A DNA stretch of 64,000 nt from Auanema rhodensis. Taxonomy: Eukaryota; Animalia; Nematoda. Below, one piece after another: positions 1-53,062 of the stretch. The stretch covers positions 10,478,001 to 10,542,000 of the forward strand of contig OZ059900.1 in the NCBI GenBank assembly GCA_964057225.1, written 5' to 3'. The notes beneath the pieces were generated by a model. It saw only the letters and a program-made list of their open reading frames with translations. It made no database searches and had not been told where the DNA came from. Every line of letters begins with the position of its first letter. The first letter of the stretch is position 1. The position numbers and the translations under genes were made by a program.

Positions 1-104
1 TTGCAATATTCCGTGAAAATCTTTCGCCTTTTACTAAAGATTTCCGTGCATAGGGACGCATATGAGTATCTTTCTTTTTGGAATCCCCTCGAAAGAGCGG
101 GACA
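1..104 (+). ncRNA. U5: U5 snRNA copy, 5'-truncated by the window edge
   Basis: Contains aaatctttCGCCTTTTACTaaagattt (stem Ic/loop I) and the 3' hairpin; the first ~15 nt lie outside the window. Confidence 0.93.
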
Positions 105-291
105 TCAGCATATCAAAGCTTCAGATATAACAGGGTTGTAATATCTACAGCCTTCTTTAAAGAAAACAGCGGATTCAAAAGAAATAAAATAAACTGTAGT
201 TTGCTTTCATCTACAGTATGTATAGTTACATATATACATATAATTAACTTCCATATGATTACGTACATTTCGGGAGAGTGAGATATGGTTA

Positions 292-314
292 CCGAAAACT
301 CGAATGATATACGG
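292..314 (+). promoter_or_regulatory. Proximal sequence element (PSE, SNAPc site) of the U5 gene; repeated in every unit
   Basis: ccgaaaactcg-aatga-tatacgg lies at about -65..-43 from the inferred U5 +1 (357). Position and bipartite form resemble the C. elegans snRNA PSE as I recall it (GCGGAACCCG-N5-TGTCGG). It stays near-invariant even in the diverged edge copies. Confidence 0.7.
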
Positions 315-356
315 ATATCACCATCATAGGCCATGTTGCATGATGTTATACAGTCA

Positions 357-475
357 ACTTCTCTGGTTCCTTTGCAATATTCCGTGAAAATCTTTCGCCT
401 TTTACTAAAGATTTCCGTGCATAGGGACGCATATGAGTATCTTTCTTTTTGGAATCCCCTCGAAAGAGCGGGACA
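357..475 (+). ncRNA. U5: U5 spliceosomal snRNA, first complete copy (representative; recurs every ~371 bp to 53181)
   Basis: Universally conserved loop I CGCCUUUUAC(U) at 396-406 is closed by aaatcttt/aaagattt (388-395/407-414). It is followed by CCGUG, lower stem gttcct.tgca/tgca.agggac and ctc/gag, a U-rich Sm-position segment (441-452) and 3' hairpin tccc-ctc-GAAA-gag-c-ggga. Colinear with metazoan/nematode U5 as recalled (CUCUGGUUCC...CCGUGAAAAUCUUUCGCCUUUUACUAAAGAUUUCCGUGCA...GAGUAU...UUUUUGGA...GCGGG). Ends uncertain by a few nt. Confidence 0.96.
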
Positions 476-727
476 TCAGCATATCAAAGCTTCAGATATA
501 ACAGGGTTGTAATATCTACAGCCTTCTTTAAAGAAAACAGCGGATTCAAAAGAAATAAAATAAACTGTAGTTTGCTTTCATCTACAGTATGTATAGTTAC
601 ATATATACATATAATTAACTTCCATATGATTACGTACATTTCGGGAGAGTGAGATATGGTTACCGAAAACTCGAATGATATACGGATATCACCATCATAG
701 GCCATGTTGCATGATGTTATACAGTCA

Positions 728-3700
728 ACTTCTCTGGTTCCTTTGCAATATTCCGTGAAAATCTTTCGCCTTTTACTAAAGATTTCCGTGCATAGGGACG
801 CATATGAGTATCTTTCTTTTTGGAATCCCCTCGAAAGAGCGGGACATCAGCATATCAAAGCTTCAGATATAACAGGGTTGTAATATCTACAGCCTTCTTT
901 AAAGAAAACAGCGGATTCAAAAGAAATAAAATAAACTGTAGTTTGCTTTCATCTACAGTATGTATAGTTACATATATACATATAATTAACTTCCATATGA
1001 TTACGTACATTTCGGGAGAGTGAGATATGGTTACCGAAAACTCGAATGATATACGGATATCACCATCATAGGACATGTTGCATGATGTTATACAGTCAAC
1101 TTCTCTGGTTCCTTTGCAATATTCCGTGAAAATCTTTCGCCTTTTACTAAAGATTTCCGTGCATAGGGACGCATATGAGTATCTTTCTTTTTGGAATCCC
1201 CTCGAAAGAGCGGGACATCAGCATATCAAAGCTTCAGATATAACAGGGTTGTAATATCTACAGCCTTCTTTAAAGAAAACAGCGGATTCAAAAGAAATAA
1301 AATAAACTGTAGTTTGCTTTCATCTACAGTATGTATAGTTACATATATACATATAATTAACTTCCATATGATTACGTACATTTCGGGAGAGTGAGATATG
1401 GTTACCGAAAACTCGAATGATATACGGATATCACCATCATAGGCCATGTTGCATGATGTTATACAGTCAACTTCTCTGGTTCCTTTGCAATATTCCGTGA
1501 AAATCTTTCGCCTTTTACTAAAGATTTCCGTGCATAGGGACGCATATGAGTATCTTTCTTTTTGGAATCCCCTCGAAAGAGCGGGACATCAGCATATCAA
1601 AGCTTCAGATATAACAGGGTTGTAATCAGCCTTCTTTAAAGAAAACAGCGGATTCAAAAGAAATAAAATAAACTGTAGTTTGCTTTCATCTACAGTATGT
1701 ATAGTTACATATATACATATAATTAACTTCCATATGATTACGTACATTTCGGGAGAGTGAGATATGGTTACCGAAAACTCGAATGATATACGGATATCAC
1801 CATCATAGGCCATGTTGCATGATGTTCTACAGTCAACTTCTCTGGTTCCTTTGCAATATTCCGTGAAAATCTTTCGCCTTTTACTAAAGATTTCCGTGCA
1901 TAGGGACGCATATGAGTATCTTTCTTTTTGGAATCCCCTCGAAAGAGCGGGACATCAGCATATCAAAGCTTCAGATATAACAGGGTTGTAATATCTACAG
2001 CCTTCTTTAAAGAAAACAGCGGATTCAAAAGAAATAAAATAAACTGTAGTTTGCTTTCATCTACAGTATGTATAGTTACATATATACATATAATTAACTT
2101 CCATATGATTACGTACATTTCGGGAGAGTGAGATATGGTTACCGAAAACTCGAATGATATACGGATATCACCATCATAGGCCATGTTGCATGATGTTATA
2201 CAGTCAACTTCTCTGGTTCCTTTGCAATATTCCGTGAAAATCTTTCGCCTTTTACTAAAGATTTCCGTGCATAGGAACGCATATGAGTATCTTTCTTTTT
2301 GGAATCCCCTCGAAAGAGCGGGACATCAGCATATCAAAGCTTCAGATATAACAGGGTTGTAATATCTACAGCCTTCTTTAAAGAAAACAGCGGATTCAAA
2401 AGAAATAAAATAAACTGTACTTTGCTTTCATCTACAGTATGTATAGTTACATATATACATATAATTAACTTCCATATGATTACGTACATTTCGGGAGAGT
2501 GAGATATGGTTACCGAAAACTCGAATGATATACGGATATCACCATCATAGGCCATGTTGCATGATGTTATACAGTCAACTTCTCTGGTTCCTTTGCAATA
2601 TTCCGTGAAAATCTTTCGCCTTTTACTAAAGATTTCCGTGCATAGGAACGCATATGAGTATCTTTCTTTTTGGAATCCCCTCGAAAGAGCGGGACATCAG
2701 CATATCAAAGCTTCAGATATAACAGGGTTGTAATATCTACAGCCTTCTTTAAAGAAAACAGCGGATTCAAAAGAAATAAAATAAACTGTAGTTTGCTTTC
2801 ATCTACAGTATGTATAGTTACATATATACATATAATTAACTTCCATATGATTACGTACATTTCGGGAGAGTGAGATATGGTTACCGAAAACTCGAATGAT
2901 ATACGGATATCACCATCATAGGCCATGTTGCATGATGTTATACAGTCAACTTCTCTGGTTCCTTTGCAATATTCCGTGAAAATCTTTCGCCTTTTACTAA
3001 AGATTTCCGTGCATAGGAACGCATATGAGTATCTTTCTTTTTGGAATCCCCTCGAAAGAGCGGGACATCAGCATATCAAAGCTTCAGATATAACAGGGTT
3101 GTAATATCTACAGCCTTCTTTAAAGAAAACAGCGGATTCAAAAGAAATAAAATAAACTGTAGTTTGCTTTCATCTACAGTATGTATAGTTACATATATAC
3201 ATATAATTAACTTCCATATGATTACGTACATTTCGGGAGAGTGAGATATGGTTACCGAAAACTCGAATGATATACGGATATCACCATCATAGGCCATGTT
3301 GCATGATGTTATACAGTCAACTTCTCTGGTTCCTTTGCAATATTCCGTGAAAATCTTTCGCCTTTTACTAAAGATTTCCGTGCATAGGAACGCATATGAG
3401 TATCTTTCTTTTTGGAATCCCCTCGAAAGAGCGGGACATCAGCATATCAAAGCTTCAGATATAACAGGGTTGTAATCAGCCTTCTTTAAAGAAAACAGCG
3501 GATTCAAAAGAAATAAAATAAACTGTAGTTTGCTTTCATCTACAGTATGTATAGTTACATATATACATATAATTAACTTCCATATGATTACGTACATTTC
3601 GGGAGAGTGAGATATGGTTACCGAAAACTCGAATGATATACGGATATCACCATCATAGGCCATGTTGCATGATGTTATACAGTCAACTTCTCTGGTTCCT

Positions 3701-6700
3701 TTGCAATATTCCGTGAAAATCTTTCGCCTTTTACTAAAGATTTCCGTGCATAGGAACGCATATGAGTATCTTTCTTTTTGGAATCCCCTCGAAAGAGCGG
3801 GACATCAGCATATCAAAGCTTCAGATATAACAGGGTTGTAATATCTACAGCCTTCTTTAAAGAAAACAGCGGATTCAAAAGAAATAAAATAAACTGTAGT
3901 TTGCTTTCATCTACAGTATGTATAGTTACATATATACATATAATTAAGTTCCATGTCATTACGTACATTTCGGGAGAGTGAGATATGGTTACCGAAAACT
4001 CGAATGATATACGGATATCACCATCATAGGCCATGTTGCATGATGTTATACAGTCAACTTCTCTGGTTCCTTTGCAATATTCCGTGAAAATCTTTCGCCT
4101 TTTACTAAAGATTTCCGTGCATAGGAACGCATATGAGTATCTTTCTTTTTGGAATCCCCTCGAAAGAGCGGGACATCAGCATATCAAAGCTTCAGATATA
4201 ACAGGGTTGTAATATCTACAGCCTTCTTTAAAGAAAACAGCGGATTCAAAAGAAATAAAATAAACTGTAGTTTGCTTTCATCTACAGTATGTATAGTTAC
4301 ATATATACATATAATTAACTTCCATATGATTACGTACATTTCGGGAGAGTGAGATATGGTTACCGAAAACTCGAATGATATACGGATATCACCATCATAG
4401 GCCATGTTGCATGATGTTATACAGTCAACTTCTCTGGTTCCTTTGCAATATTCCGTGAAAATCTTTCGCCTTTTACTAAAGATTTCCGTGCATAGGAACG
4501 CATATGAGTATCTTTCTTTTTGGAATCCCCTCGAAAGAGCGGGACATCAGCATATCAAAGCTTCAGATATAACAGGGTTGTAATCAGCCTTCTTTAAAGA
4601 AAACAGCGGATTCAAAAGAAATAAAATAAACTGTAGTTTGCTTTCATCTACAGTATGTATAGTTACATATATACATATAATTAACTTCCATATGATTACG
4701 TACATTTCGGGAGAGTGAGATATGGTTACCGAAAACTCGAATGATATACGGATATCACCATCATAGGCCATGTTGCATGATGTTATACAGTCAACTTCTC
4801 TGGTTCCTTTGCAATATTCCGTGAAAATCTTTCGCCTTTTACTAAAGATTTCCGTGCATAGGAACGCATATGAGTATCTTTCTTTTTGGAATCCCCTCGA
4901 AAGAGCGGGACATCAGCATATCAAAGCTTCAGATATAACAGGGTTGTAATATCTACAGCCTTCTTTAAAGAAAACAGCGGATTCAAAAGAAATAAAATAA
5001 ACTGTAGTTTGCTTTCATCTACAGTATGTATAGTTACATATATACATATAATTAACTTCCATATGATTACGTACATTTCGGGAGAGTGAGATATGGTTAC
5101 CGAAAACTCGAATGATATACGGATATCACCATCATAGGCCATGTTGCATGATGTTATACAGTCAACTTCTCTGGTTCCTTTGCAATATTCCGTGAAAATC
5201 TTTCGCCTTTTACTAAAGATTTCCGTGCATAGGAACGCATATGAGTATCTTTCTTTTTGGAATCCCCTCGAAAGAGCGGGACATCAGCATATCAAAGCTT
5301 CAGATATAACAGGGTTGTAATATCTACAGCCTTCTTTAAAGAAAACAGCGGATTCAAAAGAAATAAAATAAACTGTAGTTTGCTTTCATCTACAGTATGT
5401 ATAGTTACATATATACATATAATTAACTTCCATATGATTACGTACATTTCGGGAGAGTGAGATATGGTTACCGAAAACTCGAATGATATACGGATATCAC
5501 CATCATAGGCCATGTTGCATGATGTTATACCGTCAACTTCTCTGGTTCCTTTGCAATATTCCGTGAAAATCTTTCGCCTTTTACTAAAGATTTCCGTGCA
5601 TAGGGACGCATATGAGTATCTTTCTTTTTGGAATCCCCTCGAAAGAGCGGGACATCAGCATATCAAAGCTTCAGATATAACAGGGTTGTAATATCTACAG
5701 CCTTCTTTGAAGAAAACAGCGGATTCAAAAGAAATAAAATAAACTGTAGTTTGCTTTCATCTACAGTATGTATAGTTACATATATACATATAATTAACTT
5801 CCATATGATTACGTACATTTCGGGAGAGTGAGATATGGTTACCGAAAACTCGAATGATATACGGATATCACCATCATAGGCCATGTTGCATGATGTTATA
5901 CAGTCAACTTCTCTGGTTCCTTTGCAATATTCCGTGAAAATCTTTCGCCTTTTACTAAAGATTTCCGTGCATAGGGACGCATATGAGTATCTTTCTTTTT
6001 GGAATCCCCTCGAAAGAGCGGGACATCAGCATATCAAAGCTTCAGATATAACAGGGTTGTAATATCTAGAGCCTTCTTTAAAGAAAACAGCGGACTCAAA
6101 AGAAATAAAATAAACTGTAGTTTGCTTTCATCTACAGTATGTATAGTTACATATATACATATAATTAACTTCCATATGATTACGTACATTTCGGGAGAGT
6201 GAGATATGGTTACCGAAAACTCGAATGATATACGGATATCACCATCATAGGCCATGTTGCATGATGTTATACAGTCAACTTCTCTGGTTCCTTTGCAATA
6301 TTCCGTGAAAATCTTTCGCCTTTTACTAAAGATTTCCGTGCATAGGGACGCATATGAGTATCTTTCTTTTTGGAATCCCCTCGAAAGAGCGGGACATCAG
6401 CATATCAAAGCTTCAGATATAACAGGGTTGTAATATCTACAGCCTTCTTTAAAGAAAACAGCGGATTCAAAAGAAATAAAATAAACTGTAGTTTGCTTTC
6501 ATCTACAGTATGTATAGTTACATATATACATATAATTAACTTCCATATGATTACGTACATTTCGGGAGAGTGAGATATGGTTACCGAAAACTCGAATGAT
6601 ATACGGATATCACCATCATAGGCCATGTTGCATGATATTATACAGTCAACTTCTCTGGTTCCTTTGCAATATTCCGTGAAAATCTTTCGCCTTTTACTAA

Positions 6701-9700
6701 AGATTTCCGTGCATAGGGACGCATATGAGTATCTTTCTTTTTGGAATCCCCTCGAAAGAGCGGGACATCAGCATATCAAAGCTTCAGATATAACAGGGTT
6801 GTAATATCTACAGCCTTCTTTAAAGAAAACAGCGGATTCAAAAGAAATAAAATAAACTGTAGTTTGCTTTCATCTACAGTATGTATAGTTACATATATAC
6901 ATATAATTAACTTCCATATGATTACGTACATTTCGGGAGAGTGAGATATGGTTACCGAAAACTCGAATGATATACGGATATCACCATCATAGGCCATGTT
7001 GCATGATGTTCTACAGTCAACTTCTCTGGTTCCTTTGCAATATTCCGTGAAAATCTTTCGCCTTTTACTAAAGATTTCCGTGCATAGGGACGCATATGAG
7101 TATCTTTCTTTTTGGAATCCCCTCGAAAGAGCGGGACATCAGCATATCAAAGCTTCAGATATAACAGGGTTGTAATATCTACAGCCTTCTTTAAAGAAAA
7201 CAGCGGATTCAAAAGAAATAAAATAAACTGTAGTTTGCTTTCATCTACAGTATGTATAGTTACATATATACATATAATTAACTTCCATATGATTACGTAC
7301 ATTTCGGGAGAGTGAGATATGGTTACCGAAAACTCGAATGATATACGGATATCACCATCATAGGCCATGTTGCATGATGTTATACAGTCAACTTCTCTGG
7401 TTCCTTTGCAATATTCCGTGAAAATCTTTCGCCTTTTACTAAAGATTTCCGTGCATAGGGACGCATATGAGTATCTTTCTTTTTGGAATCCCCTTGAAAG
7501 AGCGGGACATCAGCATATCAAAGCTTCAGATATAACAGGGTTGTAATATCTACAGCCTTCTTTAAAGAAAACAGCGGACTCAAAAGAAATAAAATAAACT
7601 GTAGTTTGCTTTCATCTACAGTATGTATAGTTACATATATACATATAATTAACTTCCATATGATTACGTACATTTCGGGAGAGTGAGATATGGTTACCGA
7701 AAACTCGAATGATATACGGATATCACCATCATAGGCCATGTTGCATGATGTTATACAGTCAACTTCTCTGGTTCCTTTGCAATATTCCGTGAAAATCTTT
7801 CGCCTTTTACTAAAGATTTCCGTGCATAGGGACGCATATGAGTATCTTTCTTTTTGGAATCCCCTCGAAAGAGCGGGACATCAGCATATCAAAGCTTCAG
7901 ATATAACAGGGTTGTAATATCTACAGCCTTCTTTAAAGAAAACAGCGGATTCAAAAGAAATAAAATAAACTGTAGTTTGCTTTCATCTACAGTATGTATA
8001 GTTACATATATACATATAATTAACTTCCATATGATTACGTACATTTCGGGAGAGTGAGATATGGTTACCGAAAACTCGAATGATATACGGATATCACCAT
8101 CATAGGCCATGTTGCATGATATTATACAGTCAACTTCTCTGGTTCCTTTGCAATATTCCGTGAAAATCTTTCGCCTTTTACTAAAGATTTCCGTGCATAG
8201 GGACGCATATGAGTATCTTTCTTTTTGGAATCCCCTCGAAAGAGCGGGACATCAGCATATCAAAGCTTCAGATATAACAGGGTTGTAATATCTACAGCCT
8301 TCTTTAAAGAAAACAGCGGATTCAAAAGAAATAAAATAAACTGTAGTTTGCTTTCATCTACAGTATGTATAGTTACATATATACATATAATTAACTTCCA
8401 TATGATTACGTACATTTCGGGAGAGTGAGATATGGTTACCGAAAACTCGAATGATATACGGATATCACCATCATAGGCCATGTTGCATGATGTTCTACAG
8501 TCAACTTCTCTGGTTCCTTTGCAATATTCCGTGAAAATCTTTCGCCTTTTACTAAAGATTTCCGTGCATAGGGACGCATATGAGTATCTTTCTTTTTGGA
8601 ATCCCCTCGAAAGAGCGGGACATCAGCATATCAAAGCTTCAGATATAACAGGGTTGTAATATCTACAGCCTTCTTTAAAGAAAACAGCGGATTCAAAAGA
8701 AATAAAATAAACTGTAGTTTGCTTTCATCTACAGTATGTATAGTTACATATATACATATAATTAACTTCCATATGATTACGTACATTTCGGGAGAGTGAG
8801 ATATGGTTACCGAAAACTCGAATGATATACGGATATCACCATCATAGGCCATGTTGCATGATGTTATACAGTCAACTTCTCTGGTTCCTTTGCAATATTC
8901 CGTGAAAATCTTTCGCCTTTTACTAAAGATTTCCGTGCATAGGGACGCATATGAGTATCTTTCTTTTTGGAATCCCCTTGAAAGAGCGGGACATCAGCAT
9001 ATCAAAGCTTCAGATATAACAGGGTTGTAATATCTACAGCCTTCTTTAAAGAAAACAGCGGACTCAAAAGAAATAAAATAAACTGTAGTTTGCTTTCATC
9101 TACAGTATGTATAGTTACATATATACATATAATTAACTTCCATATGATTACGTACATTTCGGGAGAGTGAGATATGGTTACCGAAAACTCGAATGATATA
9201 CGGATATCACCATCATAGGCCATGTTGCATGATGTTATACAGTCAACTTCTCTGGTTCCTTTGCAATATTCCGTGAAAATCTTTCGCCTTTTACTAAAGA
9301 TTTCCGTGCATAGGGACGCATATGAGTATCTTTCTTTTTGGAATCCCCTCGAAAGAGCGGGACATCAGCATATCAAAGCTTCAGATATAACAGGGTTGTA
9401 ATCAGCCTTCTTTAAAGAAAACAGCGGATTCAAAAGAAATAAAATAAACTGTAGTTTGCTTTCATCTACAGTATGTATAGTTACATATATACATATAATT
9501 AACTTCCATATGATTACGTACATTTCGGGAGAGTGAGATATGGTTACCGAAAACTCGAATGATATACGGATATCACCATCATAGGCCATGTTGCATGATG
9601 TTATACAGTCAACTTCTCTGGTTCCTTTGCAATATTCCGTGAAAATCTTTCGCCTTTTACTAAAGATTTCCGTGCATAGGGACGCATATGAGTATCTTTC

Positions 9701-12700
9701 TTTTTGGAATCCCCTCGAAAGAGCGGGACATCAGCATATCAAAGCTTCAGATATAACAGGGTTGTAATATCTACAGCCTTCTTTAAAGAAAACAGCGGAT
9801 TCAAAAGAAATAAAATAAACTGTAGTTTGCTTTCATCTACAGTATGTATAGTTACATATATACATATAATTAACTTCCATATGATTACGTACATTTCGGG
9901 AGAGTGAGATATGGTTACCGAAAACTCGAATGATATACGGATATCACCATCATAGGCCATGTTGCATGATGTTATACAGTCAACTTCTCTGGTTCCTTTG
10001 CAATATTCCGTGAAAATCTTTCGCCTTTTACTAAAGATTTCCGTGCATAGGGACGCATATGAGTATCTTTCTTTTTGGAATCCCCTCGAAAGAGCGGGAC
10101 ATCAGCATATCAAAGCTTCAGATATAACAGGGTTGTAATATCTACAGCCTTCTTTAAAGAAAACAGCGGATTCAAAAGAAATAAAATAAACTGTAGTTTG
10201 CTTTCATCTACAGTATGTATAGTTACATATATACATATAATTAACTTCCATATGATTACGTACATTTCGGGAGAGTGAGATATGGTTACCGAAAACTCGA
10301 ATGATATACGGATATCACCATCATAGGCCATGTTGCATGATGTTATACAGTCAACTTCTCTGGTTCCTTTGCAATATTCCGTGAAAATCTTTCGCCTTTT
10401 ACTAAAGATTTCCGTGCATAGGGACGCATATGAGTATCTTTCTTTTTGGAATCCCCTCGAAAGAGCGGGACATCAGCATATCAAAGCTTCAGATATAACA
10501 GGGTTGTAATATCTACAGCCTTCTTTAAAGAAAACAGCGGATTCAAAAGAAATAAAATAAACTGTAGTTTGCTTTCATCTACAGTATGTATAGTTACATA
10601 TATACATATAATTAACTTCCATATGATTACGTACATTTCGGGAGAGTGAGATATGGTTACCGAAAACTCGAATGATATACGGATATCACCATCATAGGCC
10701 ATGTTGCATGATGTTATACAGTCAACTTCTCTGGTTCCTTTGCAATATTCCGTGAAAATCTTTCGCCTTTTACTAAAGATTTCCGTGCATAGGGACGCAT
10801 ATGAGTATCTTTCTTTTTGGAATCCCCTCGAAAGAGCGGGACATCAGCATATCAAAGCTTCAGATATAACAGGGTTGTAATATCTACAGCCTTCTTTAAA
10901 GAAAACAGCGGATTCAAAAGAAATAAAATAAACTGTAGTTTGCTTTCATCTACAGTATGTATAGTTACATATATACATATAATTAACTTCCATATGATTA
11001 CGTACATTTCGGGAGAGTGAGATATGGTTACCGAAAACTCGAATGATATACGGATATCACCATCATAGGCCATGTTGCATGATGTTATACAGTCAACTTC
11101 TCTGGTTCCTTTGCAATATTCCGTGAAAATCTTTCGCCTTTTACTAAAGATTTCCGTGCATAGGGACGCATATGAGTATCTTTCTATTTGGAATCCCCTC
11201 GAAAGAGCGGGACATCAGCATATCAAAGCTTCAGATATAACAGGGTTGTAATATCTACAGCCTTCTTTAAAGAAAACAGCGGATTCAAAAGAAATAAAAT
11301 AAACTGTAGTTTGCTTTCATCTACAGTATGTATAGTTACATATATACATATAATTAACTTCCATATGATTACGTACATTTCGGGAGAGTGAGATATGGTT
11401 ACCGAAAACTCGAATGATATACGGATATCACCATCATAGGCCATGTTGCATGATGTTATACAGTCAACTTCTCTGGTTCCTTTGCAATATTCCGTGAAAA
11501 TCTTTCGCCTTTTACTAAAGATTTCCGTGCATAGGGACGCATATGAGTATCTTTCTTTTTGGAATCCCCTCGAAAGAGCGGGACATCAGCATATCAAAGC
11601 TTCAGATATAACAGGGTTGTAATATCTACAGCCTTCTTTAAAGAAAACAGCGGATTCAAAAGAAATAAAATAAACTGTAGTTTGCTTTCATCTACAGTAT
11701 GTATAGTTACATATATACATATAATTAAGTTCCATGTCATTACGTACATTTCGGGAGAGTGAGATATGGTTACCGAAAACTCGAATGATATACAGATATC
11801 ACCATCATAGGCCATGTTGCATGATGTTATACAGTCAACTTCTCTGGTTCCTTTGCAATATTCCGTGAAAATCTTTCGCCTTTTACTAAAGATTTCCGTG
11901 CATAGGGACGCATATGAGTATCTTTCTTTTTGGAATCCCCTCGAAAGAGCGGGACATCAGCATATCAAAGCTTCAGATATAACAGGGTTGTAATATCTAC
12001 AGCCTTCTTTAAAGAAAACAGCGGATTCAAAAGAAATAAAATAAACTGTAGTTTGCTTTCATCTACAGTATGTATAGTTACATATATACATATAATTAAC
12101 TTCCATATGATTACGTACATTTCGGGAGAGTGAGATATGGTTACCGAAAACTCGAATGATATACGGATATCACCATCATAGGCCATGTTGCATGATGTTA
12201 TACAGTCAACTTCTCTGGTTCCTTTGCAATATTCCGTGAAAATCTTTCGCCTTTTACTAAAGATTTCCGTGCATAGGGACGCATATGAGTATCTTTCTTT
12301 TTGGAATCCCCTTGAAAGAGCGGGACATCAGCATATCAAAGCTTCAGATATAACAGGGTTGTAATATCTACAGCCTTCTTTAAAGAAAACAGCGGATTCA
12401 AAAGAAATAAAATAAACTGTAGTTTGCTTTCATCTACAGTATGTATAGTTACATATATACATATAATTAACTTCCATATGATTACGTACATTTCGGGAGA
12501 GTGAGATATGGTTACCGAAAACTCGAATGATATACGGATATCACCATCATAGGCCATGTTGCATGATGTTATACAGTCAACTTCTCTGGTTCCTTTGCAA
12601 TATTCCGTGAAAATCTTTCGCCTTTTACTAAAGATTTCCGTGCATAGGGACGCATATGAGTATCTTTCTTTTTGGAATCCCCTCGAAAGAGCGGGACATC

Positions 12701-15700
12701 AGCATATCAAAGCTTCAGATATAACAGGGTTGTAATATCTACAGCCTTCTTTAAAGAAAACAGCGGATTCAAAAGAAATAAAATAAACTGTAGTTTGCTT
12801 TCATCTACAGTATGTATAGTTACATATATACATATAATTAACTTCCATATGATTACGTACATTTCGGGAGAGTGAGATATGGTTACCGAAAACTCGAATG
12901 ATATACGGATATCACCATCATAGGCCATGTTGCATGATGTTATACAGTCAACTTCTCTGGTTCCTTTGCAATATTCCGTGAAAATCTTTCGCCTTTTACT
13001 AAAGATTTCCGTGCATAGGGACGCATATGAGTATCTTTCTTTTTGGAATCCCCTCGAAAGAGCGGGACATCAGCATATCAAAGCTTCAGATATAACAGGG
13101 TTGTAATATCTACAGCCTTCTTTAAAGAAAACAGCGGATTCAAAAGAAATAAAATAAACTGTAGTTTGCTTTCATCTACAGTATGTATAGTTACATATAT
13201 ACATATAATTAACTTTCATATGATTACGTACATTTCGGGAGAGTGAGATATGGTTACCGAAAACTCGAATGATATACGGATATCACCATCATAGGCCATG
13301 TTGCATGATGTTATACAGTCAACTTCTCTGGTTCCTTTGCAATATTCCGTGAAAATCTTTCGCCTTTTACTAAAGATTTCCGTGCATAGGGACGCATATG
13401 AGTATCTTTCTTTTTGGAATCCCCTCGAAAGAGCGGGACATCAGCATATCAAAGCTTCAGATATAACAGGGTTGTAATATCTACAGCCTTCTTTAAAGAA
13501 AACAGCGGATTCAAAAGAAATAAAATAAACTGTAGTTTGCTTTCATCTACAGTATGTATAGTTACATATATACATATAATTAACTTCCATATGATTACGT
13601 ACATTTCGGGAGAGTGAGATATGGTTACCGAAAACTCGAATGATATACGGATATCACCATCATAGGCCATGTTGCATGATGTTATACAGTCAACTTCTCT
13701 GGTTCCTTTGCAATATTCCGTGAAAATCTTTCGCCTTTTACTAAAGATTTCCGTGCATAGGGACGCATATGAGTATCTTTCTTTTTGGAATCCCCTCGAA
13801 AGAGCGGGACATCAGCATATCAAAGCTTCAGATATAACAGGGTTGTAATATCTACAGCCTTTTTTAAAGAAAACAGCGGATTCAAAAGAAATAAAATAAA
13901 CTGTAGTTTGCTTTCATCTACAGTATGTATAGTTACATATATACATATAATTAACTTCCATATGATTACGTACATTTCGGGAGAGTGAGATATGGTTACC
14001 GAAAACTCGAATGATATACGGATATCACTATCATAGGCCATGTTGCATGATGTTATACAGTCAACTTCTCTGGTTCCTTTGCAATATTCCGTGAAAATCT
14101 TTCGCCTTTTACTAAAGATTTCCGTGCATAGGGACGCATATGAGTATCTTTCTTTTTGGAATCCCCTCGAAAGAGCGGGACATCAGCATATCAAAGCTTC
14201 AGATATAACAGGGTTGTAATATCTACAGCCTTCTTTAAAGAAAACAGCGGATTCAAAAGAAATAAAATAAACTGTAGTTTGCTTTCATCTACAGTACGTA
14301 TAGTTACATATATACATATAATCAACTTCCATATGATTACGTACATTTCGGGAGAGTGAGATATGGTTACCGACAACTCGAATGATATACGGATATCACC
14401 ATCATAGGCCATGTTGCATGATGTTATACAGTCAACTTCTCTGGTTCCTTTGCAATATTCCGTGAAAATCTTTCGCCTTTTACTAAAGATTTCCGTGCAT
14501 AGGGACGCATATGAGTATCTTTCTTTTTGGAATCCCCTCGAAAGAGCGGGACATCAGCATATCAAAGCTTCAGATATAACAGGGTTGTAATATCTACAGC
14601 CTTCTTTAAAGAAAACAGCGGATTCAAAAGAAATAAAATAAACTGTAGTTTGCTTTCATCTACAGTATGTATAGTTACATATATACATATAATTAACTTC
14701 TATATGATTACGTACGTTTCGGGAGAGTGAGATATGGTTACCGAAAACTCGAATGATATACGGATATCACCATCATAGGCCATGTTGCATGATGTTATAC
14801 AGTCAACTTCTCTGGTTCCTTTGCAATATTCCGTGAAAATCTTTCGCCTTTTACTAAAGATTTCCGTGCATAGGGACGCATATGAGTATCTTTCTTTTTG
14901 GAATCCCCTCGAAAGAGCGGGACATCAGCATATCAAAGCTTCAGATATAACAGGGTTGTAATATCTACAGCCTTCTTTAAAGAAAACAGCGGATTCAAAA
15001 GAAATAAAATAAACTGTAGTTTGCTTTCATCTACAGTATGTATAGTTACATATATACATATAATTAACTTCTATATGATTACGTACGTTTCGGGAGAGTG
15101 AGATATGGTTACCGAAAACTCGAATGATATACGGATATCACCATCATAGGCCATGTTGCATGATGTTATACAGTCAACTTCTCTGGTTCCTTTGCAATAT
15201 TCCGTGAAAATCTTTCGCCTTTTACTAAAGATTTCCGTGCATAGGGACGCATATGAGTATCTTTCTTTTTGGAATCCCCTCGAAAGAGCGGGACATCAGC
15301 ATATCAAAGCTTCAGATATAACAGGGTTGTAATATCTACAGCCTTCTTTAAAGAAAACAGCGGATTCAAAAGAAATAAAATAAACTGTAGTTTGCTTTCA
15401 TCTACAGTATGTATAGTTACATATATACATATAATTAACTTCCATATGATTACGTACATTTCGGGAGAGTGAGATATGGTTACCGAAAACTCGAATGATA
15501 TACGGATATCACTATCATAGGCCATGTTGCATGATGTTATACAGTCAACTTCTCTGGTTCCTTTGCAATATTCCGTGAAAATCTTTCGCCTTTTACTAAA
15601 AATTTCCGTGCATAGGGACGCATATGAGTATCTTTCTTTTTGGAATCCCCTCGAAAGAGCGGGACATCAGCATATCAAAGCTTCAGATATAACAGGGTTG

Positions 15701-18700
15701 TAATATCTACAGCCTTCTTTAAAGAAAACAGCGGATTCAAAAGAAATAAAATAAACTGTAGTTTGCTTTCATCTACAGTATGTATAGTTACATATATACA
15801 TATAATTAACTTCTATATGATTACGTACATTTCGGGAGAGTGAGATATGGTTACCGAAAACTCGAATGATATACGGATATCACCATCATAGGCCATGTTG
15901 CATGATGTTATACAGTCAACTTCTCTGGTTCCTTTGCAATATTCCGTGAAAATCTTTCGCCTTTTACTAAAGATTTCCGTGCATAGGGACGCATATGAGT
16001 ATCTTTCTTTTTGGAATCCCCTCGAAAGAGCGGGACATCAGCATATCAAAGCTTCTGATAAAACAGGGTTGTAATATCTACAGCCTTCTTTAAAGAAAAC
16101 AGCGGATTCAAAAGAAATAAAATAAACTGTAGTTTGCTTTCATCTACAGTATGTATAGTTACATATATACATATAATTAACTTCCATATGATTACGTACA
16201 TTTCGGGAGAGTGAGATATGGTTACCGAAAACTCGAATGATATACAGATATCACCATCATAGGCCATGTTGCATGATGTTATACAGTCAACTTCTCTGGT
16301 TCCTTTGCAATATTCCGTGAAAATCTTTCGCCTTTTACTAAAGATTTCCGTGCATAGGGACGCATATGAGTATCTTTCTTTTTGGAATCCCCTCGAAAGA
16401 GCGGGACATCAGCATATCAAAGCTTCAGATATAACAGGGTTGTAATATCTACAGCCTTCTTTAAAGAAAACAGCGGATTCAAAAGAAATAAAATAAACTG
16501 TAGTTTGCTTTCATCTACAGTATGTATAGTTACATGTATACATATAATTAACTTCCATATGATTACGTACATTTCGGGAGAGTGAGATATGGTTACCGAA
16601 AACTCGAATGATATACGGATATCACCATCATAGGCCATGTTGCATGATGTTATACAGTCAACTTCTCTGGTTCCTTTGCAATATTCCGTGAAAATCTTTC
16701 GCCTTTTACTAAAGATTTCCGTGCATAGGGACGCATATGAGTATCTTTCTTTTTGGAATCCCCTCGAAAGAGCGGGACATCAGCATATCAAAGCTTCAGA
16801 TATAACAGGGTTGTAATATCTACAGCCTTCTTTAAAGAAAACAGCGGATTCAAAAGAAATAAAATAAACTGTAGTTTGCTTTATCTACAGTATGTATAGT
16901 TACATATATACATATAATTAACTTCCATATGATTACGTACATTTCGGGAGAGTGAGATATGGTTACCGAAAACTCGAATGATATACGGATATCACTATTA
17001 TAGGCCATGTTGCATGATGTTATACAGTCAACTTCTCTGGTTCCTTTGCAATATTCCGTGAAAATCTTTCGCCTTTTACTAAAGATTTCCGTGCATAGGG
17101 ACGCATATGAGTATCTTTCTTTTTGGAATCCCCTCGAAAGAGCGGGACATCAGCATATCAAAGCTTCAGATATAACAGGGTTGTAATATCTACAGCCTTC
17201 TTTAAAGAAAACAGCGGATTCAAAAGAAATAAAATAAACTGTAGTTTGCTTTCATCTACAGTATGTATAGTTACATATATACATATAATTAACTTCCATA
17301 TGATTACGTACATTTCGGGAGAGTGAGATATGGTTACCGAAAACTCGAATGATATACGGATATCACCATCATAGGCCATGTTGCATGATGTTATACAGTC
17401 AACTTCTCTGGTTCCTTTGCAATATTCCGTGAAAATCTTTCGCCTTTTACTAAAGATTTCCGTGCATAGGGACGCATATGAGTATCTTTCTTTTTGGAAT
17501 CCCCTCGAGAGAGCGGGACATCAGCATATCAAAGCTTCTGATAAAACAGGGTTGTAATATCTACAGCCTTCTTTAAAGAAAACAGCGGATTCAAAAGAAA
17601 TAAAATAAACTGTAGTTTGCTTTCATCTACAGTATGTATAGTTACTTATATACATATAATTAACTTCTATATGATTACGTACATTTCGGGAGAGTGAGAT
17701 ATGGTTACCGAAAACTCGAATGATATACGGATGTCACCATCATAGGCCATGTTGCATGATGTTATACAGTCAACTTCTCTGGTTCCTTTGCAATATTCCG
17801 TGAAAATCTTTCGCCTTTTACTAAAGATTTCCGTGCAAAGGGACGCATATGAGTATCTTTCTTTTTGGAATCCCCTCGAAAGAGCGGGACATCAGCATAT
17901 CAAAGCTTCAGATATAACAGGGTTGTAATATCTACAGCCTTCTTTAAAGAAAACAGCGGATTCAAAAGAAATAAAATAAACTGTAGTTTGCTTTCATCTA
18001 CAGTATGTATAGTTACTTATATACATATAATTAACTTCTATATGATTACGTACATTTCGGGAGAGTGAGATATGGTTACCGAAAACTCGAATGATATACG
18101 GATGTCACCATCATAGGCCATGTTGCATGATGTTATACAGTCAACTTCTCTGGTTCCTTTGCAATATTCCGTGAAAATCTTTCGCCTTTTACTAAAGATT
18201 TCCGTGCAAAGGGACGCATATGAGTATCTTTCTTTTTGGAATCCCCTCGAAAGAGCGGGACATCAGCATATCAAAACTTCAGATATAACAGGGTTGTAAT
18301 ATCTACAGCCTTCTTTAAAGAAAACAGCGGATTCAAAAGAAATAAAATAAACTGTAGTTTGCTTTCATCTACAGTATGTATAGTTACTTATATACATATA
18401 ATTAACTTCTATATGATTACGTACATTTCGGGAGAGTGAGATATGGTTACCGAAAACTCGAATGATATACGGATATCACCATCATAGGCCATGTTGCATG
18501 ATGTTATACAGTCAACTTCTCTGGTTCCTTTGCAATATTCCGTGAAAATCTTTCGCCTTTTACTAAAGATTTCCGTGCATAGGGACGCATATGAGTATCT
18601 TTTTTTTTTGGAATCCCCTCGAAAGAGCGGGACATCAGCATATCAAAGCTTCAGATATAACAGGGTTGTAATATCTACAGCCTTCTTTAAAGAAAACAGC

Positions 18701-21700
18701 GGATTCAAAAGAAATAAAATAAACTGTAGTTTGCTTTCATCTACAGTATGTATAGTTACATATATACATATAATTAACTTCCATATGATTACGTACATTT
18801 CGGGAGAGTGAGATATGGTTACCGAAAACTCGAATGATATACGGATATCACTATTATAGGCCATGTTGCATGATGTTATACAGTCAACTTCTCTGGTTCC
18901 TTTGCAATATTCCGTGAAAATCTTTCGCCTTTTACTAAAGATTTCCGTGCATAGGGACGCATATGAGTATCTTTCTTTTTGGAATCCCCTCGAAAGAGCG
19001 GGACATCAGCATATCAAAGCTTCAGATATAACAGGGTTGTAATATCTACAGCCTTCTTTAAAGAAAACAGCGGATTCAAAAGAAATAAAATAAACTGTAG
19101 TTTGCTTTCATCTACAGTATGTATAGTTACATATATACATATAATTAACTTCTATATGATTACGTACATTTCGGGAGAGTGAGATATGGTTACCGAAAAC
19201 TCGAATGATATACGGATATCACTATCATAGGCCATGTTGCATGATGTTATACAGTCAACTTCTCTGGTTCCTTTGCGATATTCCGTGAAAATCTTTCGCC
19301 TTTTACTAAAGATTTCCGTGCATAGGGACGCATATGAGTATCTTTCTTTTTGGAATTCCCTCGAAAGAGCGGGACATCAGCATATCAAAGCTTCAGATAT
19401 AACAGGGTTGTAATATCTACAGCCTTCTTTAAAGAAAACAGCGGATTCAAATGAAATAAAATAAACTGTAGTTTGCTTTCATCTACAGTATGTATAGTTA
19501 CATATATACATATAATTAACTTCCATATGATTACGTACATTTCGGGAGAGTGAGATATGGTTACCGAAAACTCGAATGATATACGGATATCACTATTATA
19601 GGCCATGTTGCATGATGTTATACAGTCAACTTCTCTGGTTCCTTTGCAATATTCCGTGAAAATCTTTCGCCTTTTACTAAAGATTTCCGTGCATAGGGAC
19701 GCATATGAGTATCTTTCTTTTTGGAATCCCCTCGAAAGAGCGGGACATCAGCATATCAAAGCTTCAGATATAACAGGGTTGTAATATCTACAGCCTTCTT
19801 TAAAGAAAACAGCGGATTCAAAAGAAATAAAATAAACTGTAGTTTGCTTTCATCTACAGTATGTATAGTTACATATATACATATAATTAACTTCCATATG
19901 ATTACGTACATTTCGGGAGAGTGAGATATGGTTACCGAAAACTCGAATGATATACGGATATCACCATCATAGGCCATGTTGCATGATGTTATACAGTCAA
20001 CTTCTCTGGTTCCTTTGCAATATTCCGTGAAAATCTTTCGCCTTTTACTAAAGATTTCCGTGCATAGGGACGCATATGAGTATCTTTCTTTTTGGAATCC
20101 CCTCGAGAGAGCGGGACATCAGCATATCAAAGCTTCTGATAAAACAGGGTTGTAATATCTACAGCCTTCTTTAAAGAAAACAGCGAATTCAAAAGAAATA
20201 AAATAAACTGTAGTTTGCTTTCATCTACAGTATGTATAGTTACATATATACATATAATTAACTTCTATATGATTACGTACATTTCGGGAGAGTGAGATAT
20301 GGTTACCGAAAACTCGAATGATATACGGATATCACCATCATAGGCCATGTTACATGATGTTATACAGTCAACTTCTCTGGTTCCTTTGCAATATTCCGTG
20401 AAAATCTTTCGCCTTTTACTAAAGATTTCCGTGCATAGGGACGCATATGAGTATCTTTCTTTTTGGAATCCCCTCGAAAGAGCGGGACATCAGCATATCA
20501 AAGCTTCAGATATAACAGGGTTGTAATATCTACAGCCTTCTTTAAAGAAAACAGCGGATTCAAAAGAAATAAAATAAACTGTAGTTTGCTTTCATCTACA
20601 GTATGTATAGTTACATATATACATATAATTAACTTCCATATGATTACGTACATTTCGGGAGAGTGAGATATGGTTACCGAAAACTCGAATGATATACGGA
20701 TATCACTATCATAGGCCATGTTGCATGATGTTATACAGTCAACTTCTCTGGTTCCTTTGCAATATTCCGTGAAAATCTTTCGCCTTTTACTAAAGATTTC
20801 CGTGCATAGGGACGCATATGAGTATCTTTCTTTTTGGAATCCCCTCGAAAGAGCGGGACATCAGCATATCAAAGCTTCAGATATAACAGGGTTGTAATAT
20901 CTACAGCCTTCTTTAAAGAAAACAGCGGATTCAAAAGAAATAAAATAAACTGTAGTTTGCTTTCATCTACAGTACGTATAGTTACATATATACATATAAT
21001 CAACTTCCATATGATTACGTACATTTCGGGAGAGTGAGATATGGTTACCGACAACTCGAATGATATACGGATATCACCATCATAGGCCATGTTGCATGAT
21101 GTTATACAGTCAACTTCTCTGGTTCCTTTGCAATATTCCGTGAAAATCTTTCGCCTTTTACTAAAGATTTCCGTGCATAGGGACGCATATGAGTATCTTT
21201 CTTTTTGGAATCCCCTCGAAAGAGCGGGACATCAGCATATCAAAGCTTCAGATATAACAGGGTTGTAATATCTACAGCCTTCTTTAAAGAAAACAGCGGA
21301 TTCAAATGAAATAAAATAAACTGTAGTTTGCTTTCATCTACAGTATGTATAGTTACATATATACATATAATTAACTTCCATATGATTACGTACATTTCGG
21401 GAGAGTGAGATATGGTTACCGAAAACTCGAATGATATACGGATATCACCATCATAGGCCATGTTGCATGATGTTATACAGTCAACTTCTCTGGTTCCTTT
21501 GCAATATTCCGTGAAAATCTTTCGCCTTTTACTAAAGATTTCCGTGCATAGGGACGCATATGAGTATCTTTCTTTTTGGAATCCCCTCGAAAGAGCGGGA
21601 CATCAGCATATCAAAGCTTCAGATATAACAGGGTTGTAATATCTACAGCCTTCTTTAAAGAAAACAGCGGATTCAAAAGAAATAAAATAAACTGTAGTTT

Positions 21701-24700
21701 GCTTTCATCTACAGTATGTATAGTTACATATATACATATAATTAACTTCCATATGATTACGTACATTTCGGGAGAGTGAGATATGGTTACCGAAAACTCG
21801 AATGATATACGGATATCACTATTATAGGCCATGTTGCATGATGTTATACAGTCAACTTCTCTGGTTCCTTTGCAATATTCCGTGAAAATCTTTCGCCTTT
21901 TACTAAAGATTTCCGTGCATAGGGACGCATATGAGTATCTTTCTTTTTGGAATCCCCTCGAAAGAGCGGGACATCAGCATATCAAAGCTTCAGATATAAC
22001 AGGGTTGTAATATCTACAGCCTTCTTTAAAGAAAACAGCGGATTCAAAAGAAATAAAATAAACTGTAGTTTGCTTTCATCTACAGTATGTATAGTTACAT
22101 ATATACATATAATTAACTTCCATATGATTACGTACATTTCGGGAGAGTGAGATATGGTTACCGAAAACTCGAATGATATACGGATATCACCATCATAGGC
22201 CATGTTACATGATGTTATACAGTCAACTTCTCTGGTTCCTTTGCAATATTCCGTGAAAATCTTTCGCCTTTTACTAAAGATTTCCGTGCATAGGGACGCA
22301 TATGAGTATCTTTCTTTTTGGAATCCCCTCGAAAGAGCGGGACATCAGCATATCAAAGCTTCAGATATAACAGGGTTGTAATATCTACAGCCTTCTTTAA
22401 AGAAAACAGCGGATTCAAAAGAAATAAAATAAACTGTAGTTTGCTTTCATCTACAGTATGTATAGTTACATATATACATATAATTAACTTCCATATGATT
22501 ACGTACATTTCGGGAGAGTGAGATATGGTTACCGAAAACTCGAATGATATACGGATATCACTATCATAGGCCATGTTGCATGATGTTATACAGTCAACTT
22601 CTCTGGTTCCTTTGCAATATTCCGTGAAAATCTTTCGCCTTTTACTAAAGATTTCCGTGCATAGGGACGCATATGAGTATCTTTCTTTTTGGAATCCCCT
22701 CGAAAGAGCGGGACATCAGCATATCAAAGCTTCAGATATAACAGGGTTGTAATATCTACAGCCTTCTTTAAAGAAAACAGCGGATTCAAAAGAAATAAAA
22801 TAAACTGTAGTTTGCTTTCATCTACAGTATGTATAGTTACATATATACATATAATTAACTTCCATATGATTACGTACATTTCGGGAGAGTGAGATATGGT
22901 TACCGAAAACTCGAATGATATACGGATATCACCATCATAGGCCATGTTGCATGATGTTATACAGTCAACTTCTCTGGTTCCTTTGCAATATTCCGTGAAA
23001 ATCTTTCGCCTTTTACTAAAGATTTCCGTGCATAGGGACGCATATGAGTATCTTTCTTTTTGGAATCCCCTCGAGAGAGCGGGACATCAGCATATCAAAG
23101 CTTCTGATAAAACAGGGTTGTAATATCTACAGCCTTCTTTAAAGAAAACAGCGAATTCAAAAGAAATAAAATAAACTGTAGTTTGCTTTCATCTACAGTA
23201 TGTATAGTTACATATATACATATAATTAACTTCCATATGATTACGTACATTTCGGGAGAGTGAGATATGGTTACCGAAAACTCGAATGATATACGGATAT
23301 CACCATCATAGGCCATGTTACATGATGTTATACAGTCAACTTCTCTGGTTCCTTTGCAATATTCCGTGAAAATCTTTCGCCTTTTACTAAAGATTTCCGT
23401 GCATAGGGACGCATATGAGTATCTTTCTTTTTGGAATCCCCTCGAAAGAGCGGGACATCAGCATATCAAAGCTTCAGATATAACAGGGTTGTAATATCTA
23501 CAGCCTTCTTTAAAGAAAACAGCGGATTCAAAAGAAATAAAATAAACTGTAGTTTGCTTTCATCTACAGTATGTATAGTTACATATATACATATAATTAA
23601 CTTCCATATGATTACGTACATTTCGGGAGAGTGAGATATGGTTACCGAAAACTCGAATGATATACGGATATCACTATCATAGGCCATGTTGCATGATGTT
23701 ATACAGTCAACTTCTCTGGTTCCTTTGCAATATTCCGTGAAAATCTTTCGCCTTTTACTAAAGATTTCCGTGCATAGGGACGCATATGAGTATCTTTCTT
23801 TTTGGAATCCCCTCGAGAGAGCGGGACATCAGCATATCAAAGCTTCTGATAAAACAGGGTTGTAATATCTACAGCCTTCTTTAAAGAAAACAGCGAATTC
23901 AAAAGAAATAAAATAAACTGTAGTTTGCTTTCATCTACAGTATGTATAGTTACATATATACATATAATTAAGTTCCATATGATTACGTACATTTCGGGAG
24001 AGTGAGATATGGTTACCGAAAACTCGAATGATATACGGATATCACCATCATAGGCCATGTTACATGATGTTATACAGTCAACTTCTCTGGTTCCTTTGCA
24101 ATATTCCGTGAAAATCTTTCGCCTTTTACTAAAGATTTCCGTGCATAGGGACGCATATGAGTATCTTTCTTTTTGGAATCCCCTCGAAAGAGCGGGACAT
24201 CAGCATATCAAAGCTTCAGATATAACAGGGTTGTAATATCTACAGCCTTCTTTAAAGAAAACAGCGGATTCAAAAGAAATAAAATAAACTGTAGTTTGCT
24301 TTCATCTACAGTATGTATAGTTACATATATACATATAATTAACTTCCATATGATTACGTACATTTCGGGAGAGTGAGATATGGTTACCGAAAACTCGAAT
24401 GATATACGGATATCACTATCATAGGCCATGTTGCATGATGTTATACAGTCAACTTCTCTGGTTCCTTTGCAATATTCCGTGAAAATCTTTCGCCTTTTAC
24501 TAAAGATTTCCGTGCATAGGGACGCATATGAGTATCTTTCTTTTTGGAATCCCCTCGAAAGAGCGGGACATCAGCATATCAAAGCTTCAGATATAACAGG
24601 GTTGTAATATCTACAGCCTTCTTTAAAGAAAACAGCGGATTCAAAAGAAATAAAATAAACTGTAGTTTGCTTTCATCTACAGTACGTATAGTTACATATA

Positions 24701-27700
24701 TACATATAATCAACTTCCATATGATTACGTACATTTCGGGAGAGTGAGATATGGTTACCGACAACTCGAATGATATACGGATATCACCATCATAGGCCAT
24801 GTTGCATGATGTTATACAGTCAACTTCTCTGGTTCCTTTGCAATATTCCGTGAAAATCTTTCGCCTTTTACTAAAGATTTCCGTGCATAGGGACGCATAT
24901 GAGTATCTTTCTTTTTGGAATCCCCTCGAAAGAGCGGGACATCAGCATATCAAAGCTTCAGATATAACAGGGTTGTAATATCTACAGCCTTCTTTAAAGA
25001 AAACAGCGGATTCAAATGAAATAAAATAAACTGTAGTTTGCTTTCATCTACAGTATGTATAGTTACATATATACATATAATTAACTTCCATATGATTACG
25101 TACATTTCGGGAGAGTGAGATATGGTTACCGAAAACTCGAATGATATACGGATATCACCATCATAGGCCATGTTGCATGATGTTATACAGTCAACTTCTC
25201 TGGTTCCTTTGCAATATTCCGTGAAAATCTTTCGCCTTTTACTAAAGATTTCCGTGCATAGGGACGCATATGAGTATCTTTCTTTTTGGAATCCCCTCGA
25301 AAGAGCGGGACATCAGCATATCAAAGCTTCAGATATAACAGGGTTGTAATATCTACAGCCTTCTTTAAAGAAAACAGCGGATTCAAAAGAAATAAAATAA
25401 ACTGTAGTTTGCTTTCATCTACAGTATGTATAGTTACATATATACATATAATTAACTTCCATATGATTACGTACATTTCGGGAGAGTGAGATATGGTTAC
25501 CGAAAACTCGAATGATATACGGATATCACTATTATAGGCCATGTTGCATGATGTTATACAGTCAACTTCTCTGGTTCCTTTGCAATATTCCGTGAAAATC
25601 TTTCGCCTTTTACTAAAGATTTCCGTGCATAGGGACGCATATGAGTATCTTTCTTTTTGGAATCCCCTCGAAAGAGCGGGACATCAGCATATCAAAGCTT
25701 CAGATATAACAGGGTTGTAATATCTACAGCCTTCTTTAAAGAAAACAGCGGATTCAAAAGAAATAAAATAAACTGTAGTTTGCTTTCATCTACAGTATGT
25801 ATAGTTACATATATACATATAATTAACTTCCATATGATTACGTACATTTCGGGAGAGTGAGATATGGTTACCGAAAACTCGAATGATATACGGATATCAC
25901 CATCATAGGCCATGTTACATGATGTTATACAGTCAACTTCTCTGGTTCCTTTGCAATATTCCGTGAAAATCTTTCGCCTTTTACTAAAGATTTCCGTGCA
26001 TAGGGACGCATATGAGTATCTTTCTTTTTGGAATCCCCTCGAAAGAGCGGGACATCAGCATATCAAAGCTTCAGATATAACAGGGTTGTAATATCTACAG
26101 CCTTCTTTAAAGAAAACAGCGGATTCAAAAGAAATAAAATAAACTGTAGTTTGCTTTCATCTACAGTATGTATAGTTACATATATACATATAATTAACTT
26201 CCATATGATTACGTACATTTCGGGAGAGTGAGATATGGTTACCGAAAACTCGAATGATATACGGATATCACTATCATAGGCCATGTTGCATGATGTTATA
26301 CAGTCAACTTCTCTGGTTCCTTTGCAATATTCCGTGAAAATCTTTCGCCTTTTACTAAAGATTTCCGTGCATAGGGACGCATATGAGTATCTTTCTTTTT
26401 GGAATCCCCTCGAAAGAGCGGGACATCAGCATATCAAAGCTTCAGATATAACAGGGTTGTAATATCTACAGCCTTCTTTAAAGAAAACAGCGGATTCAAA
26501 AGAAATAAAATAAACTGTAGTTTGCTTTCATCTACAGTACGTATAGTTACATATATACATATAATCAACTTCCATATGATTACGTACATTTCGGGAGAGT
26601 GAGATATGGTTACCGACAACTCGAATGATATACGGATATCACCATCATAGGCCATGTTGCATGATGTTATACAGTCAACTTCTCTGGTTCCTTTGCAATA
26701 TTCCGTGAAAATCTTTCGCCTTTTACTAAAGATTTCCGTGCATAGGGACGCATATGAGTATCTTTCTTTTTGGAATCCCCTCGAAAGAGCGGGACATCAG
26801 CATATCAAAGCTTCAGATATAACAGGGTTGTAATATCTACAGCCTTCTTTAAAGAAAACAGCGGATTCAAAAGAAATAAAATAAACTGTAGTTTGCTTTC
26901 ATCTACAGTATGTATAGTTACATATATACATATAATTAACTTTCATATGATTACGTACATTTCGGGAGAGTGAGATATGGTTACCGAAAACTCGAATGAT
27001 ATACGGATATCACCATCATAGGCCATGTTGCATGATGTTATACAGTCAACTTCTCTGGTTCCTTTGCAATATTCCGTGAAAATCTTTCGCCTTTTACTAA
27101 AGATTTCCGTGCATAGGGACGCATATGAGTATCTTTCTTTTTGGAATCCCCTCGAAAGAGCGGGACATCAGCATATCAAAGCTTCAGATATAACAGGGTT
27201 GTAATATCTACAGCCTTCTTTAAAGAAAACAGCGGATTCAAAAGAAATAAAATAAACTGTAGTTTGCTTTCATCTACAGTATGTATAGTTACATATATAC
27301 ATATAATTAACTTTCATATGATTACGTACATTTCGGGAGAGTGAGATATGGTTACCGAAAACTCGAATGATATACGGATATCACCATCATAGGCCATGTT
27401 GCATGATGTTATACAGTCAACTTCTCTGGTTCCTTTGCAATATTCCGTGAAAATCTTTCGCCTTTTACTAAAGATTTCCGTGCATAGGGACGCATATGAG
27501 TATCTTTCTTTTTGGAATCGCCTCGAAAGAGCGGGACATCAGCATATCAAAGCTTCAGATATAACAGGGTTGTAATATCTACAGCCTTCTTTAAAGAAAA
27601 CAGCGGATTCAAAAGAAATAAAATAAACTGTAGTTTGCTTTCATCTACAGTATGTATAGTTACATATATACATATAATTAACTTCCATATGATTACGTAC

Positions 27701-52805: not shown

Positions 52806-53062
52806 ATCAGCATATCAAAGCTTCTGATATAACAGGATTGTAATATCTACAGCCTTCTTTAAAGAAAACAGCGAATACAAAAGAAATACAATAAACTGTA
52901 GTTTACTTTCATCTACAGTATGAATAGTTACATATGTATATATATATAATTAACTTCCATATGGTTACGTACATTTCGGGACAGTGAGATATGGTTACCG
53001 AAAACTCGAATGATATACGGATATCACCATCATAGGCCATGTTGCATTATGTTATACAGTCA

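Follow-up and report, generated by a model that had tools for sequence, protein, structure and literature searches.

The greater part of the 64-kb stretch of DNA that was analysed (the window) is occupied by a head-to-tail tandem array of U5 snRNA genes. A search of the window with Rfam cmscan located 143 full U5 genes and one further gene truncated at the window start; all of them lie on the forward strand. Each of the full genes covered positions 1-117 of RF00020 and scored between 69 and 77 bits (lowest, 69.3), where membership of the U5 family required full-model coverage and the gathering score of 40 bits. The repeat unit was 371 bp long in 120 of the 142 intervals and 366-377 bp long in the remainder. 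Because the first gene is truncated by the window start, the array extends past the left edge of the window; its right end falls within a spacer, at approximately 53331. The copy number is at least 143 and the span at least 53 kb. The features of the locus are collected in Table 1.

Table 1. Features of the U5 array, of its linker variants and of the related metagenomic locus. Positions are those of the window unless another contig is named.
Feature	Position	Strand	Basis and remarks
Tandem array of U5 snRNA gene units	1..53331	+	Rfam matches, unit spacing, boundary sequence
Representative U5 snRNA gene	358..474	+	RF00020, 74.4 bits, E=9e-11; fold; model positions 1-117
Loop I, CGCCUUUUACU	396..406	+	Per-column variation; cmscan alignment; invariant in 143/143 copies
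Single-stranded linker with deviant Sm region, UAUCUUUCUUUUUGG	438..452	+	Window sequence, variant tally, pattern search
Alternative upstream Sm register, UAUCUUU	438..444	+	Register scoring
Orthologous Sm register, UCUUUUU+GG	444..452	+	Register scoring; alignment to L091
3' terminal hairpin (7 base pairs, one bulged C, GAAA tetraloop)	455..473	+	Fold, pair list, alignment
3'-box-like element, AAAGCUUCAGA (putative)	486..496	+	Sequence; starts 12 nt past the hairpin
Distal subfamily of units	45982..53331	+	Unit alignment, variant tally
T10 linker variant	18515, 34099, 34471, 34843, 45238, 45610		6 units
T11 linker variant	36699, 38927, 41526		3 units
TATTTTTC linker variant (RNA form UAUUUUUC)	45.9-53.1 kb		6 units
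CATC linker variant (RNA form CAUC)	45.9-53.1 kb		6 units
CUAUUUGG linker variant	11186		Single copy
UUUUCGG linker variant	35308		Single copy
Divergent snRNA genes of L091, one U4 and one U5	235-375 and 903-1023 of the L091 contig	- and +	About 530 bp apart
			

The representative gene is built from stems Ia, Ib and Ic, an 11-nt loop I, the linker and a 3' hairpin, and the pairing of its stem Ib/IL2/Ia architecture, taken from the cmscan alignment and the pair list, agrees with the RF00020 model. Variants of stem Ib that improve pairing were common to runs of neighbouring units (2207-5165 and 17773-18144). G70A, which turns a U.G pair into U-A, was found in nine consecutive units, and T66A, which mends the U.U mismatch of this stem, was found in two adjacent units that are the best-scoring copies of the array (77 bits).

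The array genes are U5 by score, loop I, stems and 3' hairpin, and depart from U5 at the RAU4-6GR Sm site. In the representative gene, stem Ia and the 3' hairpin are separated by TATCTTTCTTTTTGG, and a pattern search of the window for the canonical site RATTTTTGR found it in 0 of the 143 array copies; the only match in the window, at 54185, is a chance one. The cmscan alignment places a 3-nt deletion precisely on the 'uAA' of the RF00020 consensus, AAUUUUUGg. Because the Sm site of Caenorhabditis elegans U5 is reported to be AAU4-5GGA (PMC2200864), the worm-typical U run and GGA have been retained in the array and the adenosines alone are missing. Every copy carried a pyrimidine linker, and the main type, UAUCUUUCUUUUUGG, was present in 120 copies, namely 117 listed as such and three that differ in the hairpin only.

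A sequence-only reading of the same DNA had proposed that the amplified U5 has a non-canonical Sm site within a short linker, that no part of the RNA is more variable than this linker, and that loop I is invariant. All of these proposals were borne out, as was every variant position that it cited, including the T10 and T11 expansions, the single copies at 11186 and 35308 and the copies at the array edge. Its placement of the deviant segment, at 437-453, was correct to within one extra base on each side.

A relative of the array gene was retrieved by scanning metagenomes with a 5'-stem pattern, which returned 120 loci, of which one was a U5. This locus, L091 (soil-metagenome contig Ga0079222_10208520, 1184 nt), carries a U5 that scores 85.7 bits against RF00020. 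It is approximately 85% identical to the array U5, has the same 3' hairpin sequence, begins its linker with GAGUAU as the array genes do, and places the U run at the same distance from the hairpin. However, its linker consists of UAUAACUC followed by the canonical AAUUUUUG, whereas the array linker has no AA and is shorter by 2 nt. Stem Ib of L091 has a C-G pair where the array has U.U, a compensatory difference. Both genes of the L091 U4-U5 pair have canonical Sm sites (AAUUUUUGA and AAUUUUUGC).

The sequence-only reading had counted, as part of what would refute its interpretation, that the same deviant site is typical of U5 in related species; the one relative that could be retrieved has a canonical site. 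Because L091 has AAUUUUUG, the loss of the adenosines would be derived in the array lineage. The evidence that the deviant site is derived, and not common to the array and L091, is thin, coming from a single metagenomic relative. A second metagenomic locus, L017, appeared Sm-like and was rejected, as it is coding sequence. The search patterns were drawn from 361-376, 423-428 and 447-473 only, with N gaps between them, and neither the hairpin pattern nor the composite U5 pattern matched any further U5 relative in genome contigs or viral contigs. Public sequencing runs shared only 0.06-0.18 of the sampled words of the unit, and none of them contains it. Run X13 (organism F) had 18% of the unit's sampled 31-mers in common with it, which exceeds the expectation from the universally conserved U5 core alone; organism F could be closely related and have a U5 that is nearly identical.

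The regions upstream of the L091 genes were not alignable with those of the array, and no promoter element upstream of the array U5 was found, by alignment or by a search for shared k-mers, in common with the upstream regions of the L091 U5 or U4. A nematode SNAPc motif is presented in figures of PMC6436959. On the downstream side, alignment places AAAACAAGA in L091 at the position equivalent to that of AAAGCUUCAGA in the array. We take the array element to resemble the vertebrate 3' box consensus.

Register scoring of the array linker gave two candidate positions for an Sm ring. In the register orthologous to the L091 site, seven of nine positions agree with AAUUUUUGR, the two adenosines being replaced by U and C, and the register lies 4 nt before the 3' hairpin, a spacing equal to that of the canonical site in L091. 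In the upstream register, five of the seven heptad positions agree, the A at the second (SmE) position is retained, and the C falls where substitution is reported to be tolerated. In the six copies that carry C85T the upstream register becomes UAUUUUU, with agreement at six of the seven positions. The upstream register might be the one used by a ring.

Variation within the array was assessed by aligning the 142 complete units. In the 5' domain of the RNA, five of 80 columns were variable (6%), as against 78 of 253 in the spacer (31%; Fisher p=2.5e-6). The 3' hairpin was variable in 23% of its columns and the linker in 33%, and the linker was more variable than the rest of the RNA (Fisher p=0.024). 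It did not differ in variability from the spacer (p=0.78, with the U5GG block included), and there is therefore no direct sign of constraint on the Sm site itself. Despite this spacer-like variability the linker remains U-rich: all of the linker variants that have spread are changes of C to U or lengthen the U run, and the two variants that interrupt the U run are each limited to a single copy.

The variants at paired positions also departed from random expectation. Six of nine keep or create a pair, compared with 19% expected for random changes (p=0.002, becoming roughly 0.03 with transition bias, a value that was estimated and not computed). All of the variants present in three or more copies preserve pairing or change the GAAA loop to GAGA, which is still a GNRA loop, and the pair-breaking variants are confined to one or two copies. 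In a neutral satellite or an array of pseudogenes the RNA part and the spacer would be equally constrained, and the 6% and 31% found here are not of that kind. A neutral satellite is disfavoured because the 5' domain is constrained, loop I is invariant and the stem variants preserve pairing. The array U5 thus looks to be under purifying selection, and its structured parts matter to the animal; among them is the 3' hairpin, a component of the Sm-assembly signal.

Each of the approximately 20 units of the distal subfamily departs from the array consensus at 8-13 positions in the spacer (3-5% spacer divergence) and at no position of the U5 outside the linker (Poisson p about 0.01). Some units of this subfamily are 377 bp long as the result of a 6-bp insertion. 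The linker variants UAUUUUUC and CAUC alternate along it, which indicates a higher-order repeat structure near the edge of the array.

Published work on Sm assembly allows the array site to be placed between a normal site and none. In the solved U1 and U4 cores the Sm-site adenosines occupy the pockets of SmF and SmE; both pockets prefer purines, and the second A was reported not to be replaceable by G in vitro (PMC4756616). Sm rings nevertheless form on U-tracts without adenosines, at lower stability (PMC4756616; PMC2582628), and the U9 oligonucleotide cores of Raker 1999, as described in PMC4756616, are rings on sites that lack the consensus adenosines. In vitro, nearly any short stretch of U supports an Sm core, with specificity coming from the SMN complex (PMC2582628), and substitutions at U121-U124 barely changed assembly (PMC5131778). 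In yeast U5, 18 of 21 single substitutions in the Sm site were tolerated and deletion of the site was lethal (Jones & Guthrie 1990, as cited in PMC5311505); weakening any two Sm RNA-binding sites together is also lethal in yeast (PMC4986888). Judged by these data, the array genes do have an Sm site, but a weak one.

The explanation that best accommodates these observations, and to which about an even chance is given, is that the array genes are functional U5 genes whose Sm site, though weakened, still loads an ordinary Sm ring. On this view the two 5' adenosines of the Sm site have disappeared in this lineage, only a U-rich tract remains ahead of the usual 3' hairpin, and the ordinary seven-protein ring would still assemble on the linker. 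Two positions would be open to it: the orthologous heptad, UCUUUUU, where pyrimidines would fill the SmF and SmE pockets, or UAUCUUU, 6 nt further upstream, where the SmE pocket would still receive an adenosine. Either should make a weaker site than AAUUUUUGG, and the very large number of genes may offset weak assembly. We infer that the genes are transcribed and that their RNA is loaded with a ring, in one of the two registers, and that dosage may compensate for the site. An ordinary ring on a weak site is favoured because the U5GG lies 4 nt from a hairpin that is identical to that of L091 and whose variants preserve its structure, the linker is U-rich, rings on U-tracts are known and yeast U5 tolerated most single substitutions in the Sm site. 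That the RNA, if it is under selection, does acquire a ring is favoured because snRNAs without one are unstable and are degraded in human cells (PMC7293007). The adenosine pockets of SmF and SmE are both affected at once, and a working site is doubted because double weakening is lethal in yeast and the second A cannot be replaced by G in vitro; a further point against it is that no shared promoter element was recognised upstream in the comparison with L091.

As an alternative, the array may be a crippled U5 variant: one copy would have lost its Sm-site adenosines and been amplified in the manner of a satellite, its transcripts, if any, would fail Sm assembly and be degraded, and the functional U5 would be supplied by canonical genes dispersed elsewhere. 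Both the linker and the Sm region do evolve like spacer, L091 has the canonical site, no promoter motif was recognised upstream, and with both key adenosines gone the in vitro and yeast data predict a weaker core. This explanation is nonetheless considered unlikely, since it leaves unexplained the five-fold deficit of variable columns in the 5' domain relative to the spacer, the invariant loop I, the pair-preserving bias of the stem variants and a distal subfamily in which the spacer has diverged by 3-5% and the structured U5 parts are unchanged. The selection on the structured parts implies that the RNA does something, and could be reconciled with the deviant site in another way, as had been suggested from the sequence alone, if the RNA were packaged with a non-standard Sm/Lsm core into a variant U5 particle, or if it acted, at high dose, as a ring-less loop-I decoy. 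The departure from consensus falls exactly at the two positions read by SmF and SmE, and it is derived relative to L091 and fixed in 143 of 143 copies. However, nothing is conserved in the array segment beyond U-richness, and the segment is variable, unlike the defined and conserved non-canonical motif of U7. Nor does the segment resemble the 3'-terminal U tract of the U6 type that is bound by Lsm2-8 (PMC2582628), as its U run is internal and precedes a 19-nt hairpin. A decoy without a ring would be exposed to the degradation of ring-less snRNAs noted above for human cells. A special core or a decoy is considered very improbable.

A bolder reading is that the bulk U5 snRNP of this worm is assembled on the adenosine-less site. 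In that case the SmE and SmF pockets (or a paralogue) would have co-evolved with the RNA into a variant core specific to the lineage, or the ring would have slid 6 nt upstream, or the hypomorphic site would itself have driven the amplification to more than 140 genes, by way of dosage compensation. This reading is judged to have a slim chance of being correct.

Deviant Sm sites are known from other systems. The U7 Sm motif is conserved and selects Lsm10/Lsm11, and in trypanosomes snRNA-specific Sm variants serve the deviant Sm sites of U2 and U4. U7 snRNA with its Lsm10/Lsm11 core resembles the array in being an Sm-class RNA with a deviant Sm site, but its site is a defined, conserved motif that chooses specific paralogues (PMC12360213), whereas the array segment is variable and U-rich only, with no paralogue known. 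The canonical U5 of RF00020 and C. elegans (PMC2200864) shares with the array genes the full model, stems Ia, Ib and Ic, the 11-nt loop I, a U-rich segment ending in GGA and the 3' hairpin; unlike it, the array genes lack both Sm adenosines, have a linker 2-3 nt shorter and lie in tandem over at least 53 kb. The yeast U5 Sm-site mutants (as described in PMC5311505) and the U9 oligonucleotide cores (as described in PMC4756616) are like the array in that one or more adenosines are missing and a ring or viability is still supported. Those are laboratory-made and mostly single changes, whereas the array is a natural double loss fixed in a whole family. Tandem U5 families are themselves already known: in grasshoppers, families of U1, U2, U5 and U6 are head-to-tail arrays of whole snRNA genes whose copies are homogenised in the manner of concerted evolution (PMC7754599). 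Unlike those families, the gene amplified here has a non-consensus Sm site. What is unusual is a natural U5 family, apparently under selection, in which the loss of both Sm adenosines is fixed, and a limited literature search found no earlier report of a U5 family lacking both.

Few features of Sm-class snRNAs are as strongly conserved as the Sm-site adenosines. A natural family that is maintained by selection without either of them would test, in an animal, what the Sm ring and its assembly machinery require of the sequence. It would likewise show whether a weak assembly signal can be buffered by amplifying the gene. Should the array prove silent, it would be a clear case of an snRNA gene turned satellite, with a bearing on annotation and on counts of functional snRNA genes.

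Past 53331 the window is unique, AT-rich sequence whose minus-strand genes have short introns, and a search of five flanking ORFs for Pfam families gave no match. Flanking genes also had nothing above threshold in a protein atlas, a word search with one exon gave no result, and a 73-aa ORF of the spacer had no exact counterpart in any contig. Two adjoining paralogous ORF segments on the minus strand, at 56650-57390, share the motif '...FEDLDDEMKVS..NNFICKK.SIQA.VIARRERCNRLF', for which there was no Pfam match; the shared motif suggests a local duplication of an exon or gene. At 59052-61518, inside an apparent minus-strand gene, lies a complex tandem repeat whose periods are 116, 153, 177 and 445 bp, with 88-98% matches for most periods and 70% and 83% in two overlapping rows. 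Every unit contains a 12-bp sub-repeat, which would encode a Met/Asn/Thr-rich peptide, and an intron-like part. Further downstream, at 61896-62203, a 155-bp direct repeat is present in two copies (89% matches) within AT-rich intergenic sequence.
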